In this document: piece after piece, positions 33,625 through 38,856 of the stretch
Layout of the letters: each line of letters begins with the position of its first letter
How positions within the stretch are numbered: the stretch's first letter is position 1
Notes under the pieces: model-generated
Databases searched by the model: none
What the model saw: only the letters and a program-made list of their open reading frames with translations
Told to the model about the DNA's origin: nothing
Assembly: GCA_964036045.1 (NCBI GenBank)
Contig: OZ038378.1
Coordinates: 198,772,001-198,836,000 of the forward strand
DNA from: Eutreptiella sp. 'Long Island Sound 2002'
Taxonomy: Eukaryota > Protista > Euglenida
Direction of reading: 5' to 3'
Length of the DNA stretch: 64,000 bases
Translations under genes and position numbers: made by a program

Positions 33625-34559
33625 GTCCTCCCCTGCCGCGCCCCTGTCGTGCACCCGCGACGCGCTCGCACGTGCACTGCGCTGAAACCGGGCCCGGACC
33701 TGTGGCCCCGGCCCATGGGGCCTCCGCAGTCCATCACCGTGTCACGAACGTACCCCCCGTGTCCAACGAACACTCCTGTTCGGATCGTATTTTGGGGTGA
33801 CCTGATTAATGAGGTAGTGAGGGACCTAATTAGGTACAGGGCTTCAGAACCGAGGTTTCAGGGTAAAGGAGTGGGGACTCCAACAAGGGCTTCTACTCTG
33901 AAAAGTGCCGATTGAAAGCCTCCATGGCATTGTGCTTTGAATGGGCTGGGTATCTTGTGCGTCGGGATGTGTTACAGCGTTTCGCAATATTGTCGCGCGC
34001 ACCGAACGGTGTGTCCAACGAACACTCCTGTTCGAACCGCATTTTTTCAGGACCTGATTGGTTGTTGGGGGGGGGGGGGGTACAATGGGCCGGTGCTGTG
34101 CGGGCGCTTCCCCGTGACTACGTGCCGGTCATGCGGTGTCCTTCTCTGCGCCTGGGACGCGTAGATGACGCGCCTGCCAGCGCGTACCCGGCCCCACTGT
34201 GCACCCACCACTGCGCTTGCGATGCGCCCACGCCAGCCCTTCTTCGCGGACACTTTGCACCAGGGCTGTCCTTAAAAAGCCAGATTTGTTTTTTTTTGCC
34301 AATTACACCCCTTAAGGACAGCCCGCAGGGACCACGAACCGCCAGCCGCCAACGCCAACCGCCACCAACCGCCAAGCACCAAGCGCCGCCAACCGCCGTC
34401 AACCGCCAACCGCCACCGATCTCCAACCGCCAACCGCCGAGAAGGGTCCATGACCATGAAGCAGACAACGTCCCCGTTCATGTTGGCGTTACGAAAGTCT
34501 TCCTTTTTCATCCTTCTGGACAGGCCTGCTCTGCACGTGCCCGCGGGTTCTGTTTGCAG

Positions 34560-34909
34560 GGGCCGACGAGCGGAAGTACATAATCAACGTCTCTGCGATG
34601 GAGGGGCAGTTTTACCGCTACAAGAACACGACGCACCCGCACACCAACATGGCGAAGGCGGCGCTGAACATGCTGACGCGGACCTCCGCGGCGGACTATG
34701 CGCAGAACAAGATCTACATGAACAGTGTGGACACGGGCTGGATCACCGACGAGAGTCCGCTGCCGAAGCAGAACCGCAAAATTGCAAAGGACCAGCTGTT
34801 CACTCCGTTGGACGAGCAGGACGCGGCGGCGCGCGTGCTGGACCTGATCTACACCCAGAGTGAGGTCTTTGGCAGGTTTTGGAAGGATTTCCAGATTATT
34901 CCATGGTAA
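34560..34909 (+). CDS. Atypical SDR, exon 5 (last)
   Basis: Acceptor tttgcag|GG. KYIINVSAMEGQFYRYKNTTHPHTNMAKAALNMLTRTSA...MNSVDTGWITDE...RFWKDFQIIPW, then TAA. The five exons sum to 1755 nt, an uninterrupted 584-aa frame. Confidence 0.95.
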
Positions 34910-35042
34910 ATGTGGCACCGTGTGTGTGTGTGTGCTTCTGTGTGTGTGTGTATGTGTGTGTTTTCCTGCTTGCAGGGGTGGACACGACAAGTGGACCGCC
35001 CCACCCGTTGGTGCCTTCTGACCGTGTACCTGCTGTACTACA

Positions 35043-35118
35043 GAAAGGCGCCTAGCCGCATGCTCTTCCACTCCATCTTCTACTTTCTTACGGCCTGACG
35101 AGATTCGTTAGCGACCAG
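35043..35118 (+). ncRNA. Hammerhead ribozyme core, type II permutation, unit 1 (acceptor-containing form)
   Basis: GAAA 35043-46; palindrome AGGCGCCT 35046-53; CUA cleavage triplet (after 35054); stem I GCCG 35055-58/CGGC 35091-94; CTGACGA-G 35095-35102. Preceded by CTGAC and a CAG acceptor (AG 35042-43). Confidence 0.7.
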
Positions 35119-35174
35119 TGCAGTGCTCTGTCTGTCTGCCTGTTCGTCTCGCTTCAATCGTGTGTGTGTGTGTG

Positions 35175-35199
35175 TTTCCGAGTGTCTAATTGTTTTTCG
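35175..35199 (+). other. Genomic relic of the euglenid spliced-leader exon
   Basis: TTTCCGAGTGTCTAATTGTTTTTCG versus the Euglena SL as I recall it (ACTTTCTGAGTGTCTATTTTTTTTCG): about 3 differences over the 3' 24-25 nt. Joined directly to AAAGGCGCC, where sibling copies have CAG|AAAGGCGCC. Confidence 0.85.
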
Positions 35200-35263
35200 A
35201 AAGGCGCCTCGCTGCAATGACAACCATGTTTTCTATGGGGGCCCGACGAGTTGTTTTGACCAG
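35199..35263 (+). ncRNA. Hammerhead core, unit 2 (SL-joined form, core mutated)
   Basis: C-GAAA 35198-35202, AGGCGCCT, CUC (after 35210), short stem GCT/GGC, inner stem CCAT/ATGG. The core reads CCGACGA (35243-49) instead of CTGACGA. Confidence 0.65.
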
Positions 35264-35878
35264 CCCGTCTGCGATCTTCAGTGGGTCGGTGTTCTTGGTC
35301 TCGTTCACTACAGTAGTGTTGTGTAGTGTGTGTCAGGCCTTTGCTTTGTGGCTGGTTGATACTATACCAAGGGGGGGGGGAGGGTCTGAGGATGGTGGGT
35401 GGGTTTTTGTCTGGGTTTTCCCCGATTTTGGGGAAAATGCAGGTACCCCCCCTAGGCGGGGGGGGTGTCCGCTTTTTTGGGTGGGTGGGTGGGTCGCTGA
35501 GCTTGGTAGACCTCCAAAGTCGTTCATGGGCCGAGGCACATTGTGCCACATGGGGATGCTGCCACTTTGTTCAGACCTGTTTTGCTTTACACTTTTTCAC
35601 TTCAGTCTGTACATGATCAGGGACTGTCAGTGACCAGTGGAAGTAGCACAGGTCAACCAAAAGAAGGGTGTGAGTACAAACCCTGTTGCGCACATTTTCA
35701 GCACCTGCTATGGAGTGGTCAACCTGAATTTGTTTCATCCGAAATTGCTCTGTGACCCCCCCCTCAGGGTATCCGGCAGGCGGGCGGGTGGGTCTGAGAG
35801 TGGGTGTGGGTGGGTCAGCCAACATCCTGGGAGGGCCAATTTAACCCCCCCCCCACACTATCACTAAGCAAAGGCCTG

Positions 35879-35915
<37 letters not shown>

Positions 35916-36634
35916 CTCCAGGAATTCTATGGGTCTGGGGAGGGCAGGAGGGGGTGTTACTGCACTTATGCACGCCAGCACTCCGTCGCACTCCGTCCAA
36001 CTGCAACGTACCGCAGGACGGCTGGGGCTGCTCTGCAGCTCCTGAGGGGGTTCCTCCATCCGGTTTTCTTGCGTTGTTCTTGTCTCGCAGTTCTCAACAT
36101 GTGTGTGTGTGTGTGTGTGTGTGTGCGTGCGTGAACAAAACAAGGTACGGTTAAGGCAGTTTACTGTATGAGTTACTCGATGCCTGTGAAGAAGTGCATC
36201 ATTCTTGCTAAAGTTCAAAGCTGGCTAAAGGAAAAGGCGGCATGGCGGGGAGGTGAGTACAGTTCGTGGGTAGGGCCACAGAATGCAGCGCTGCACTCAT
36301 ACTCCCCTGTCTGGAATGATGATTTTGCGGCGCTGGAGGTACTGCGTGGGGCCTGTTGTACACAGGCCGACTGTGTGCGTGTATCCCCCCGGTAACGGGT
36401 GGTATGAGTATTACTTGCTGATTTGAACCATTAGATTTAGTTGGTTGGGCTGGGAGAAGTACAGGGACCTGAGGTGAGGGCTCCAACACATTCCCGCAGC
36501 CAGATGCGGCGCTTAAATGTCATTTCACTCTGTCCTTCACAGGCCCTTGGCTTAGCGCTCAGCGCGGCTGCCGAGGGCTGAAGACGGTAGAGATCGGGTG
36601 CAGGATGTGCCTCTTCCTCTCACCCTGTACTGCA

Positions 36635-36710
36635 GAAAGGCGCCTAGTCGCTGATGGTCATGTCTTTTGTTTGACTGTTTGCGGCCTGACGAGAATCTAC
36701 TTACGACCAG
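36635..36710 (+). ncRNA. Hammerhead core, type II, unit 3 (acceptor-containing form)
   Basis: Pyrimidine tract + CAG (AG 36634-35); GAAA 36635-38; AGGCGCCT; CUA (after 36646); stem I GTCGC 36647-51/GCGGC 36681-85, inner GTCA/TGAC; CTGACGA-G 36686-93. Confidence 0.75.
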
Positions 36711-36999
36711 TGCCTGTGCCTGTCCTGTTCTTGCTGGTTCTGGGCTTTGGTCGCTTTGCGTCATCCACGTGTGTGTGCGTGACTGGTCGGTATCACAAGC
36801 CTCGGTGGGCCTGAAGCAGGGCAGGGGAGGGGCAGGGCCTGACTTTCCCAATTTACGCATGTGACGAGCAGAAACGTTTAATTGTTGCTCTGTCCCGTGC
36901 GGGCCTCTGGTCCAGCGCAGCTGCCTGGGGCTATCCTCGAGTTCGAGGCCATGGTGGTGGGTCAGGATGCGTGCCTCTCTGCCCTCCGCCTGCTCTGCA

Positions 37000-37076
37000 G
37001 AAAGGCGCCTATTGGCGGCGAACATGCTTTGTCTTGTTTGACGACCCAACTGACGAGGATTCTGACACTCGGAAAC
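37000..37076 (+). ncRNA. Hammerhead core, type II, unit 4 (acceptor form with perfect anti-SL arm)
   Basis: Pyrimidine tract + CAG (AG 36999-37000); GAAA 37000-03; AGGCGCCT; CUA (after 37011); stem I TTGG 37012-15/CCAA 37046-49 (fully covaried relative to units 1 and 3), inner CGAACA/TGTTTG; CTGACGA-G 37050-57; GACACTCGGAAAC 37064-76 is the reverse complement of 35174-35186. Confidence 0.8.
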
Positions 37077-37333
37077 CGCGTTCTGCCCGTTTCTCTTGCA
37101 ATGTTGTCTGTGTATGTGTATGTGTATGTGTGTGGGTGGGTGGGTGGATGGGTGCGTGTGCGCGTACACGTGCAGTCCCCACTGGTGACAGACAAAGGGC
37201 AGGCAAATGCGGGCCGTCCGAGTGCGATGCAGGTTGCGATGGCTGATGCGGTCCCTGAGGAGCCATGATCGCTAATGGGCACACTGTTATATATGATCCA
37301 CGACAATGAACGGAGTCGGAGGATAGGTCAGTG

Positions 37334-37334
<1 letters not shown>

Positions 37335-37400
<66 letters not shown>
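37335..37400. repeat. (GT)n microsatellite
   Basis: Directly visible. Shorter GT tracts occur at 34920-34960, 35160-35174, 35885-35913 and 36100-36127. Confidence 0.95.
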
Positions 37401-38856
37401 AGTGTGTGTGCCTGTGCGGGTGCGGGTGCAGGTGCGGGTGCGTGTGCAGTCGCAGACAGTGGTGGCTCGGCGGCACAGCCGGCCCACCACCCATTTCCCT
37501 GGCGATTGTAAAGTTTTGCATAACAATTGTTTTATCGGCCAAGAATGCCGTTGCCAGCCCCGCAGCTGCTGCCTCTCGTTGCCCAGTTGGACAACTGCAC
37601 GTGCCTGTTGATGTGGAAGTGTTTGCTCGCCTTATTGTCATACAGTTGACGGAGACAGCTTTGAGTCACAGCAGGATTCAAGGGCATCCCAATGATCCGT
37701 CCATCGAAACAACACCCAAAAAAACCCACAAAAAATGCAACGGTTTTTTGACTCCAGCACAACCGCAATAAAAAGGCATTTCGCAAAAGAAGACCCCATG
37801 GCGACCAGAGTTGGTTTTGGATAATTGCTAAAGAATTTGCGTTCAACACGCAAAGTAGTATCCTGCAAATCTCTGATATCCACAAGGTACGCAGCGCATA
37901 CATCAGATCCTGATCCTTCACACAGCTACAGTCCGTCCATGCAGCGCCAACGAGGGTCAGAATCAATCATTTCAGCTGCGGTGTGGTATTGGCGCGCGGC
38001 TGTAATGCAGCAGCCCAGCCGTACACGGCTACCATGGGCATCGACGTGTGCGCTGACGGTTCCCCAACTGATTTCTCACCCCTTCTTCGGAAGCTTCCCT
38101 TTGTCCTGAACCCCCTGTCCATGTCCAGGGGGGCGGTGGAACGTTGAGCGAATGTCATAGAAGTGCTGCCTGTAGATAACAGGCCATGAAAGTGCATCGT
38201 AGCAGAAAGAAGAGGAGAGGCATCATGAGGATGTTTTTGAGGAGCCGCAGCCTAGTGTCACCTACTCACCCCCGGCGACGGGGGCTGATGAACATGGGGC
38301 ACCCACCAAGTAGCGGCAAAGACCTCCCACCTGTGCTTTCTTGTCATCCTCCGGTCGTTTCAGCTGTCCCTGCTCGGAAGCAGTACTCCTGTGTGCCCGC
38401 TGGCGTTACAAGGTGGCTGCTGCTGGCATTCGGTGACGGGGTGATGTGCTGCCCCCTGGTTTCCCTCAGGGTTGAGGAGGCCCCCTGTTGCTGATGGAGC
38501 CTTTGCACTGACGTTCATGCCCTAAGCACAGCCCCGAGAAGTGCACATGATCAGGCAATGACGGGCATGGGGAAAGTGGTTGGGCTTTTACCCCAGATCT
38601 AACGGCCAGTTTCCGGGGGTTTCCGCTCCGTTTGACTTCACCATGACTGTGGATGTCAGCTGCCAGAGCACGGTCATCTTTACACTGAGGCCCCAGTGCA
38701 CCCCTCTCCTCTGCCCATGGAATCTGGAGTTCACACGCATCTGTCTCCAGACAGTAGTTACCAGAAGGGGTTATCTAATATACCCAGGGCCTTTTGGACC
38801 GGTTTGAACCTGTGTGCGAATGTGTGTGTATATTTGAGTGAGAGTGTGTGTGTGTA

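Follow-up and report, generated by a model that had tools for sequence, protein, structure and literature searches.

The window, that is, the whole stretch of 64,000 nucleotides that was analysed, belongs to a genome of 2.28 Gb whose host relies on the euglenid spliced leader (SL). A short-chain dehydrogenase/reductase-like gene has its last exon at 34598-34909 of the window (stop codon at 34907-34909), next to a (GT)n microsatellite that hosts insertions. The segment 34558-34765 is matched with 0 differences by a contig from an estuary metatranscriptome. Downstream of the stop codon lie four related units, which were recovered with the pattern GAAAGGCGCC-N(26-56)-CNGANGA as its four matches in the window (at 35043, 35199, 36635 and 37000, against 0 expected from shuffled sequences). 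The units share a common layout, in which a G abutting AAAGGCGCCU is followed by the position-17 residue, a hairpin of 30-50 nt, CUGAYGA and then G, a tail of 60-90 nt and (GT)n. Units 1, 3 and 4 are directly preceded by a pyrimidine tract and CAG, and their core reads CTGACGA. In unit 1, an upstream outron of approximately 82 nt ends with the CAG at 35041-35043, the body starts at 35044 and the core lies at 35095-35101. Unit 4 possesses an SL-complementary arm at approximately 37057-37076, the duplex of which with the SL has an energy of -18.4 kcal/mol (z = -5.2). The features of the locus are listed in Table 1.

Table 1. Units, microsatellite tracts and insertions downstream of the dehydrogenase-like gene (positions in the window).
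Feature	Position	Strand	Basis or remark
Upstream part of the insertion-hosting (GT)n microsatellite	34920..34961	+	just past the dehydrogenase-like stop codon
Unit 1, young acceptor-form copy	34962..35159	+	motif match; 98.6% identity over 217 nt to L039, a copy elsewhere on the same contig
(GT)7-8 tract between units 1 and 2	35160..35174	+	
SL relic of unit 2, 25 nt, without its 5' end	35175..35199	+	sole such match in 64 kb
Unit 2 body	35200..35312	+	alignment to 29 relatives
Degenerate (GT)n 3' tail of unit 2	35313..35333	+	siblings end in (GT)n at the same position; tandem-repeat call
Later MITE-like insertion, 545 bp	35334..35878	.	arms 35334-35350 and 35862-35878
Unit 3, acceptor form, core CTGACGA at 36686-36692	36636..36775	+	motif match
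Unit 4, acceptor form, TTGG subfamily, core at 37050-37056	37001..37100	+	motif match

Unit 2 differs from the other three units at both its 5' end and its core. The 25 nt at its 5' end show 3 differences from the canonical euglenid SL, with 0 chance matches expected; this relic begins with TTTCC, so that the 5' (A)CAC of fuller genomic SL copies is missing, and it directly adjoins the (GT)7-8 tract, which is either the 3' tail of unit 1 or a remnant of the microsatellite that once lay 5' of the SL relic. In hammerhead numbering, the last SL base, G35199, would correspond to G12, and C35198 would correspond to C11.1. The body opens with AAA (35200-35202) and the palindrome AGGCGCCT (35202-35209), and C35210 occupies position 17, with the predicted cleavage site between 35210 and 35211; the helix I hairpin (35211-35242), the core CCGACGA (35243-35249) and the tail (35250-35312) follow. 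The arrangement G12-A13-A14, A15.1-U16.1 and non-G17 is therefore present in unit 2 (G35199, AAA, U35209 and C35210), but the hammerhead core C3-U4-G5-A6-N7-G8-A9 is broken by C35244 in place of U4, where the other three units have T. Its helix I retains only G-C, C-G and U-G pairs. The (GT)n tail resumes at 35879-35914 beyond the 545-bp element, which possesses terminal inverted repeats of 17 nt (94% complementary) as well as internal G-run and C-run inverted repeats. Because contigs from independent runs of the same organism reproduce 35148-35302 with 0 differences, the sequence of unit 2 is not an assembly slip. An earlier sequence-only reading of this DNA had described unit 2 as the only unit with an SL, as the only one with the core CCGACGA, and as having an SL that lacks its 5' end and is fused to a (GT)n tract. 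This description is correct in all details: the window contains one SL-like 25-mer, the other three units have a CAG acceptor in its place and read CTGACGA, and the relic starts at 35175 next to (GT)7-8.

The four units belong to a large repeat family. Acceptor-form junctions, in which YNCAG is immediately followed by AAAGGCGCC, were found 4,055 times genome-wide against 39 times in a reversed-pattern control, and exact junctions of the SL with AAAGGCGCC were found 337 times against 1. The 337 SL junctions are spread over all large contigs and many subfamilies. Because exact anchor words were used for these counts, better-preserved copies are sampled, and the family comprises at least 4,000 copies. 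Similarly, GAAAGGCGCCT-N(25-60)-CTGANGAG has 2,722 matches in the genome and 0 in a reversed control. The family is SINE-like in that at least 4,055 acceptor junctions are dispersed over the genome, the units measure approximately 140-430 nt, and nearly all inspected copies have a (GT)n 3' end.

In hammerhead numbering, the family motif consists of G12-A13-A14-A15.1, the palindromic AGGCGCCU in the place expected for helix III, position 17, a closed helix I hairpin, C3-A9 and G10.1. Covariation identifies helix I as a genuine feature of the family. In a set of 54 non-identical units, the first three pairs of this helix are present in 93-98%, compared with 54-75% when the partners are shuffled, and one pair type replaces another from subfamily to subfamily (GC/UA/CG; CG/UA; CG/GC). 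At position 17, 44 of the 54 units have A, 4 have C and 6 have G. Helix III is formed by AGGCGCCU only, which gives 2 bp and a tetraloop within one molecule and could give 8 bp between two molecules. Intermolecular pairing of this kind has been proposed for dimeric hammerheads, in that hammerheads regarded as acting in dimeric form are typified by a helix III that is very short and palindromic (PMC4209133). Four identical units were also observed arranged in tandem, one every 192-196 bp (G000:C1:166773849-166774490), which would permit dimeric helix III pairing within one transcript. Near the 3' end of many unit tails, a conserved CUGUUYGUC-like box was observed that can pair with the core GACGAG; it may represent an alternative structure that masks the core or a recognition site for a reverse transcriptase.

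A search of 34000-38500 and three related loci with the Rfam hammerhead models gave no match at E up to 10. This blank is weak or uninformative since the models likewise passed over a minimal motif at another locus, L005 (G000:C2:84023380-84026399), that looks like a textbook case. There, on the minus strand, an SL relic is followed 9 nt on by what looks like a minimal type I hammerhead, which comprises CUGAUGAG, a GGC/GCC helix II and GAAA; its helix III is a single pair capped by a 4-nt loop, and its helix I has 4 bp. This motif, just 3' of the SL match at a locus offset of approximately 1500, drew no Rfam report. Two other readings of the family were rejected. A box C/D snoRNA, with CUGA as the D box, is disfavoured by the lack of a conserved C box and by the clear hammerhead-type covariation of helix I, and the short open reading frames vary between units.

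The origin of the SL in unit 2 can be approached through its 30 best relatives, which are 77-89% identical to it, the nearest copy at about 83-89%. Among them, 14 are SL-form, 13 are acceptor-form with CAG, and 3 are 5'-truncated and fused to (GT)n. In the 14 SL-form relatives, the SL is joined at the exact base where the 13 acceptor-form relatives have CAG, and the approximately 290 nt of upstream sequence that the acceptor-form relatives share, starting right after a (GT)n run, are absent from the SL-form relatives. The SL exon thus stands at the 3' splice acceptor of the paralogues, with the upstream outron lost, as in an SL-tagged retrocopy. In the subfamily of unit 2, this upstream region contains a short, pyrimidine-rich stretch bounded by GT and AG, and it may hold the promoter of the element. 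GT-rich sequence precedes 13 of the 14 SL-form siblings, and nearly all of them end in (GT)n; the missing 5' end of the SL is the rule among these siblings and not a peculiarity of unit 2. Unlike mRNA-type retrocopies, which have a poly(A) 3' tail, the copies end in (GT)n.

Target-site duplications were found at two SL-form siblings, namely at least 40 nt with 3 mismatches at L066 (G000:C6:131154372-131157529) and approximately 16 nt at L067 (G000:C22:30559274-30562413), and both are unusually long for a short retrocopy. At unit 2 itself, a target-site duplication is unreadable because both flanks are (GT)n, and no empty site was found among other loci, homology with which ends at the (GT)n tracts. 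Taken together, the shared junction, the lost outron, the (GT)n context and the duplications point to reverse transcription of a trans-spliced RNA and integration preferentially in (GT)n. The proposal that the family is trans-spliced at the CAG preceding AAAGG and retro-copied is thereby borne out by the 337 SL junctions, the junction common to SL-form and acceptor-form siblings and the two target-site duplications, and the view that unit 2 arose as a reverse transcript of a trans-spliced RNA and was integrated is strongly supported by these sequence comparisons. Three sequencing runs, represented by their contigs, include the stretch; their depth is even across gene and spacer, so that they look like DNA. 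In the contigs of one RNA library, the estuary metatranscriptome, only short unspliced contigs of the unit-1 type were present, and nothing on unit 2.

Two further observations concern SL relics elsewhere in the genome. At L062 (G000:C19:17790942-17794104), a second SL relic lies right after the (GT)n tail of a first SL-form copy, approximately 190 nt 3', which suggests that SL-tagged retrocopies pile up at the same microsatellite. In addition, a second SL-tagged class was observed at L003, L006, L010, L017, L021, L027 and L030, in which the SL is joined 2-11 nt upstream of GAAAGGCGCC (junctions, for example, SL+ACCG or SL+UG) and helix I is a very short hairpin. In this class, the SL is mostly preceded by a poly-G run just upstream instead of (GT)n, which may be a different integration signature or a cap-related non-templated addition.

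Based on these comparisons, unit 2 (35175-35333) is very probably an old retrocopy that was dead on arrival and has decayed neutrally. A transcript of the 'GCCUCAAUGAC' subfamily would have received the SL at its CAG acceptor and would have been reverse-transcribed nearly to its capped 5' end, presumably by an enzyme of LINE type that favours (GT)n, and the cDNA could then have been integrated into the (GT)n microsatellite downstream of the dehydrogenase gene. Without the approximately 290-nt upstream region, the copy was presumably unable to propagate further, and it would have decayed neutrally to approximately 16% divergence, with the T-to-C change in the core among the decay changes. To judge from relative divergence and nesting, insertion of unit 2 into (GT)n would have been followed by insertion of the MITE-like element into the tail of unit 2 and, finally, by insertion of unit 1 into the (GT)n in front. 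This late arrival of unit 1 would have created the adjacency that suggested a composite ribozyme, which is considered below.

The core change itself requires no special explanation. Outside the core, unit 2 is 16.5% diverged from the subfamily consensus, a measure that serves as a rough clock only, and at this divergence at least one change in the six core sites is expected by chance (P = 0.66). The 3 changes in the 25 nt of the SL relic match the decay of the body. Within the subfamily of unit 2, six of the 14 SL-form copies have a changed core, and five of these six rank in the top seven of the 14 by divergence (non-core divergence of at least 15.5%); an acceptor-form copy, L086, carries the same T-to-C core change independently. 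Non-core divergence in this subfamily is 12.2% for SL-form and 8.7% for acceptor-form copies, and the core rates are lower than both, with 6/84 and 6/78 changes per site, respectively.

If, as the sequence-only reading had suggested, unit 2 could be captured with its SL because its core was dead, core mutations would be enriched in SL-form relative to acceptor-form copies. No such enrichment was found overall, in the TTGG subfamily, which has a strong SL-pairing arm, or in the subfamily of unit 2. In the whole family, CUGANGA is intact in 223 of 337 SL-form copies (66%) and in at most 2,588 of 4,055 acceptor-form copies (64%, an upper bound, about 5% of the rows being double hits). The corresponding counts are 26/35 (74%) and 549/752 (73%) in the TTGG subfamily (Fisher p = 1.0), and 8/14 and 9/13 in the subfamily of unit 2. 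Most SL-bearing copies thus possess an intact core, and do so as often as acceptor-form copies, which is the very result that the sequence-only reading had named as its refutation. The fallback that had been offered, in which the mutation post-dates insertion, fits the non-core divergence of unit 2. The T-to-C change is in all likelihood a product of ordinary decay that was not required for capture.

A broader role of the SL in ribozyme formation was also considered. In 45 of 54 units, G12 directly follows the A of the acceptor, and no pairing between outron and tail that could form helix II was detected in 47 acceptor-form units, the subfamily of unit 2 included (mean z of -0.1); on the sequence evidence, helix II is not encoded in the family DNA. 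In the TTGG, CTGG, CACC and other subfamilies, the tail contains 9-12 nt complementary to the SL (duplex energies between -12 and -19.5 kcal/mol, with z from -2 to -5), and the minimum-energy fold of a natural SL-joined copy, L059, is closed by the duplex between the SL and this arm. Once joined by trans-splicing, the SL would supply C11.1, G12 and, in arm-bearing subfamilies, a helix II of 9-12 bp. SL-form copies are approximately two-fold rarer in the TTGG subfamily, the arm of which has 12 nt complementary to the SL, than in the rest of the family (SL-form to acceptor-form counts of 35/752 versus 302/3,303; odds ratio 0.51, p = 8e-5). This deficit could reflect SL-dependent loss of RNA or, equally, subfamily age, expression or splicing efficiency. 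It is conceivable, albeit unlikely, that the family is a split hammerhead completed by trans-splicing, in which case the TTGG deficit would be the footprint of SL-triggered self-cleavage, unit 2 and its 336 SL-tagged relatives would be uncleaved fossils, and cleavage would be partial, slow or in need of a dimer.

For the subfamily of unit 2, little speaks for cleavage of this kind. Helix II between unit 2 and the SL would be limited to the pair G10.1-C11.1 and hence falls short of a hammerhead helix II, and its subfamily's tails show less SL complementarity than shuffled sequences do (z of +1.4 to +2.3), the tail of unit 2 itself being outside this scoring because its core does not match the scan pattern. 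Since the subfamily possesses neither an SL-pairing arm nor a detectable helix II, there is no reason to expect cleavage even with U4 in place. None of the copies of the subfamily starts at the predicted cleavage site; two truncated copies fused to (GT)n start 4 nt further in.

Alternatively, the C may already have been present by chance in the source gene, so that unit 2 would be a faithful copy of a mutant master. Mutant templates do exist, as approximately one-third of the acceptor-form copies have no intact core and L086 shows the very same change in acceptor form. However, no close relative shares this change together with the other private differences of unit 2, and the high private divergence of unit 2 makes a change after insertion the simpler account, which renders a mutant master improbable.

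Still less probable is the capture scenario in its strict form, in which SL-joined RNA would cleave itself 11 nt behind the SL junction and only a core-dead U4-to-C variant would be copied whole with its SL. U4 is indeed among the conserved core bases of the hammerhead (review PMC6155905), no unit in the window other than unit 2 is in SL form or has a mutant core, and the two-fold deficit of SL-form copies in the arm-bearing subfamily would fit some SL-dependent loss of RNA. Against this scenario stand the mostly intact cores of SL-form copies, at a rate equal to that of acceptor-form copies both overall and in the TTGG subfamily, and, in the subfamily of unit 2, core hits that are no commoner in SL-form copies, a tail with no SL complementarity, the absence of an outron-encoded helix II in the 47 acceptor-form units, and the lack of copies that begin at the predicted cleavage site.

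It had further been suggested that CTGACGA-GA of unit 1 could pair with TC-GAAA of unit 2 to give a type I ribozyme across 35091-35214. In a working composite of this kind, CUGACGA-GA would come from unit 1, and UC-GAAA, helix III and the cleavage site from unit 2. Such a composite is very hard to credit. As far as the letters go, a helix II of 2 bp (GA/UC) and a helix I of 4 bp, one of them G-U, are possible, but this helix II would have to close a loop of approximately 95 nt, and the structure is absent from the predicted minimum-energy fold of 35085-35225. The Rfam hammerhead models, which are a weak negative here given the missed L005 motif, did not match it at E up to 10. Moreover, no other locus shows this juxtaposition, and the copies that it brings together differ greatly in age, the nearest copy being 98.6% identical for unit 1 and about 83-89% identical for unit 2; as unit 1 is a much younger insertion than unit 2, the composite would be an accident of adjacency. 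Finally, it is scarcely plausible that the SL-like 25-mer derives from a fragment of an SL-RNA gene, or matches the SL by chance, and was joined to the unit as DNA: SL-RNA genes are multicopy in euglenids, but the unit follows the SL exon directly with no SL intron starting with GT, the junction recurs 337 times on all large contigs and in many subfamilies, and the expectation for chance matches is 0.

Neutral decay of an SL-tagged retrocopy thus remains the preferred reading, and unit 2 itself is an ordinary molecular fossil; it is informative as a member of its class. The 337 SL-tagged copies are DNA-level evidence of trans-splicing exactly between the core positions G12 and A13, and they indicate that SL-joined, full-length RNAs with intact cores were common enough for hundreds of reverse transcriptions. 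Because core integrity is equal in SL-form and acceptor-form copies, any SL-dependent cleavage would be inefficient, conditional (for example, dimer-dependent) or limited to certain subfamilies. A retroposon family that is both (GT)n-tailed and (GT)n-targeting would, in addition, contribute to an explanation of how this 2.3-Gb genome came to be rich in microsatellites.

Compared with known systems, the family motif shares with the minimal or dimeric hammerheads of Penelope-like elements and with metazoan type I hammerheads the CUGANGA and GAAA core, a conserved G10.1, a palindromic sequence that could pair between two copies and would give a very short helix III, a covarying helix I and its presence in many retroelement copies (PMC4209133). 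In contrast to those hammerheads, the motif is circularly permuted, with helix I as a closed hairpin and helix II open; the 3' strand of helix II and G12 lie across the trans-splice acceptor, so that the DNA never encodes a complete ribozyme, and unit 2 in particular lacks a partner for helix II and carries C instead of U at position 4. Schistosoma Sm-alpha and the retrozymes of plants and animals are likewise short, non-autonomous retroelements with thousands of copies and a hammerhead motif (PMC7229834, PMC7761336). However, they contain complete type I or III ribozymes that are active as monomers or dimers and form circular RNAs, and SL-tagged copies are not a known feature of theirs. L1Tc and NARTc of Trypanosoma cruzi resemble the family as euglenozoan retroelements with a small-ribozyme motif at the RNA's 5' end in a genome with SL trans-splicing (PMC3383444). 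Their ribozyme differs in being HDV-like, complete and experimentally active, and their transcripts are described as unspliced, with no SL-tagged copies reported (PMC3383444). Overall, the known systems that come nearest on the ribozyme side are hammerhead SINE-like elements, retrozymes and Penelope-like elements, all with complete ribozymes and no link to trans-splicing.

On the side of the SL relics, the closest parallel is found in dinoflagellates, where relic SLs are often 5'-truncated and are taken as proof of reverse transcription of mature RNA. Slamovits and Keeling are said to have described such relics in 2008 in retroposed dinoflagellate genes, as a result of processed cDNA recycling. 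A literature search found no report of SL relics in retroposed DNA or of SL-tagged retrocopies for Euglena or other euglenids. The euglenid copies described here share with the dinoflagellate relics an SL exon that stands in the DNA directly before the post-acceptor sequence and that is often 5'-truncated. They differ from them in their host and in their template, which is a non-coding, SINE-like unit of approximately 140 nt instead of an mRNA, and the family has a (GT)n 3' end instead of poly(A) and resides in (GT)n microsatellites.
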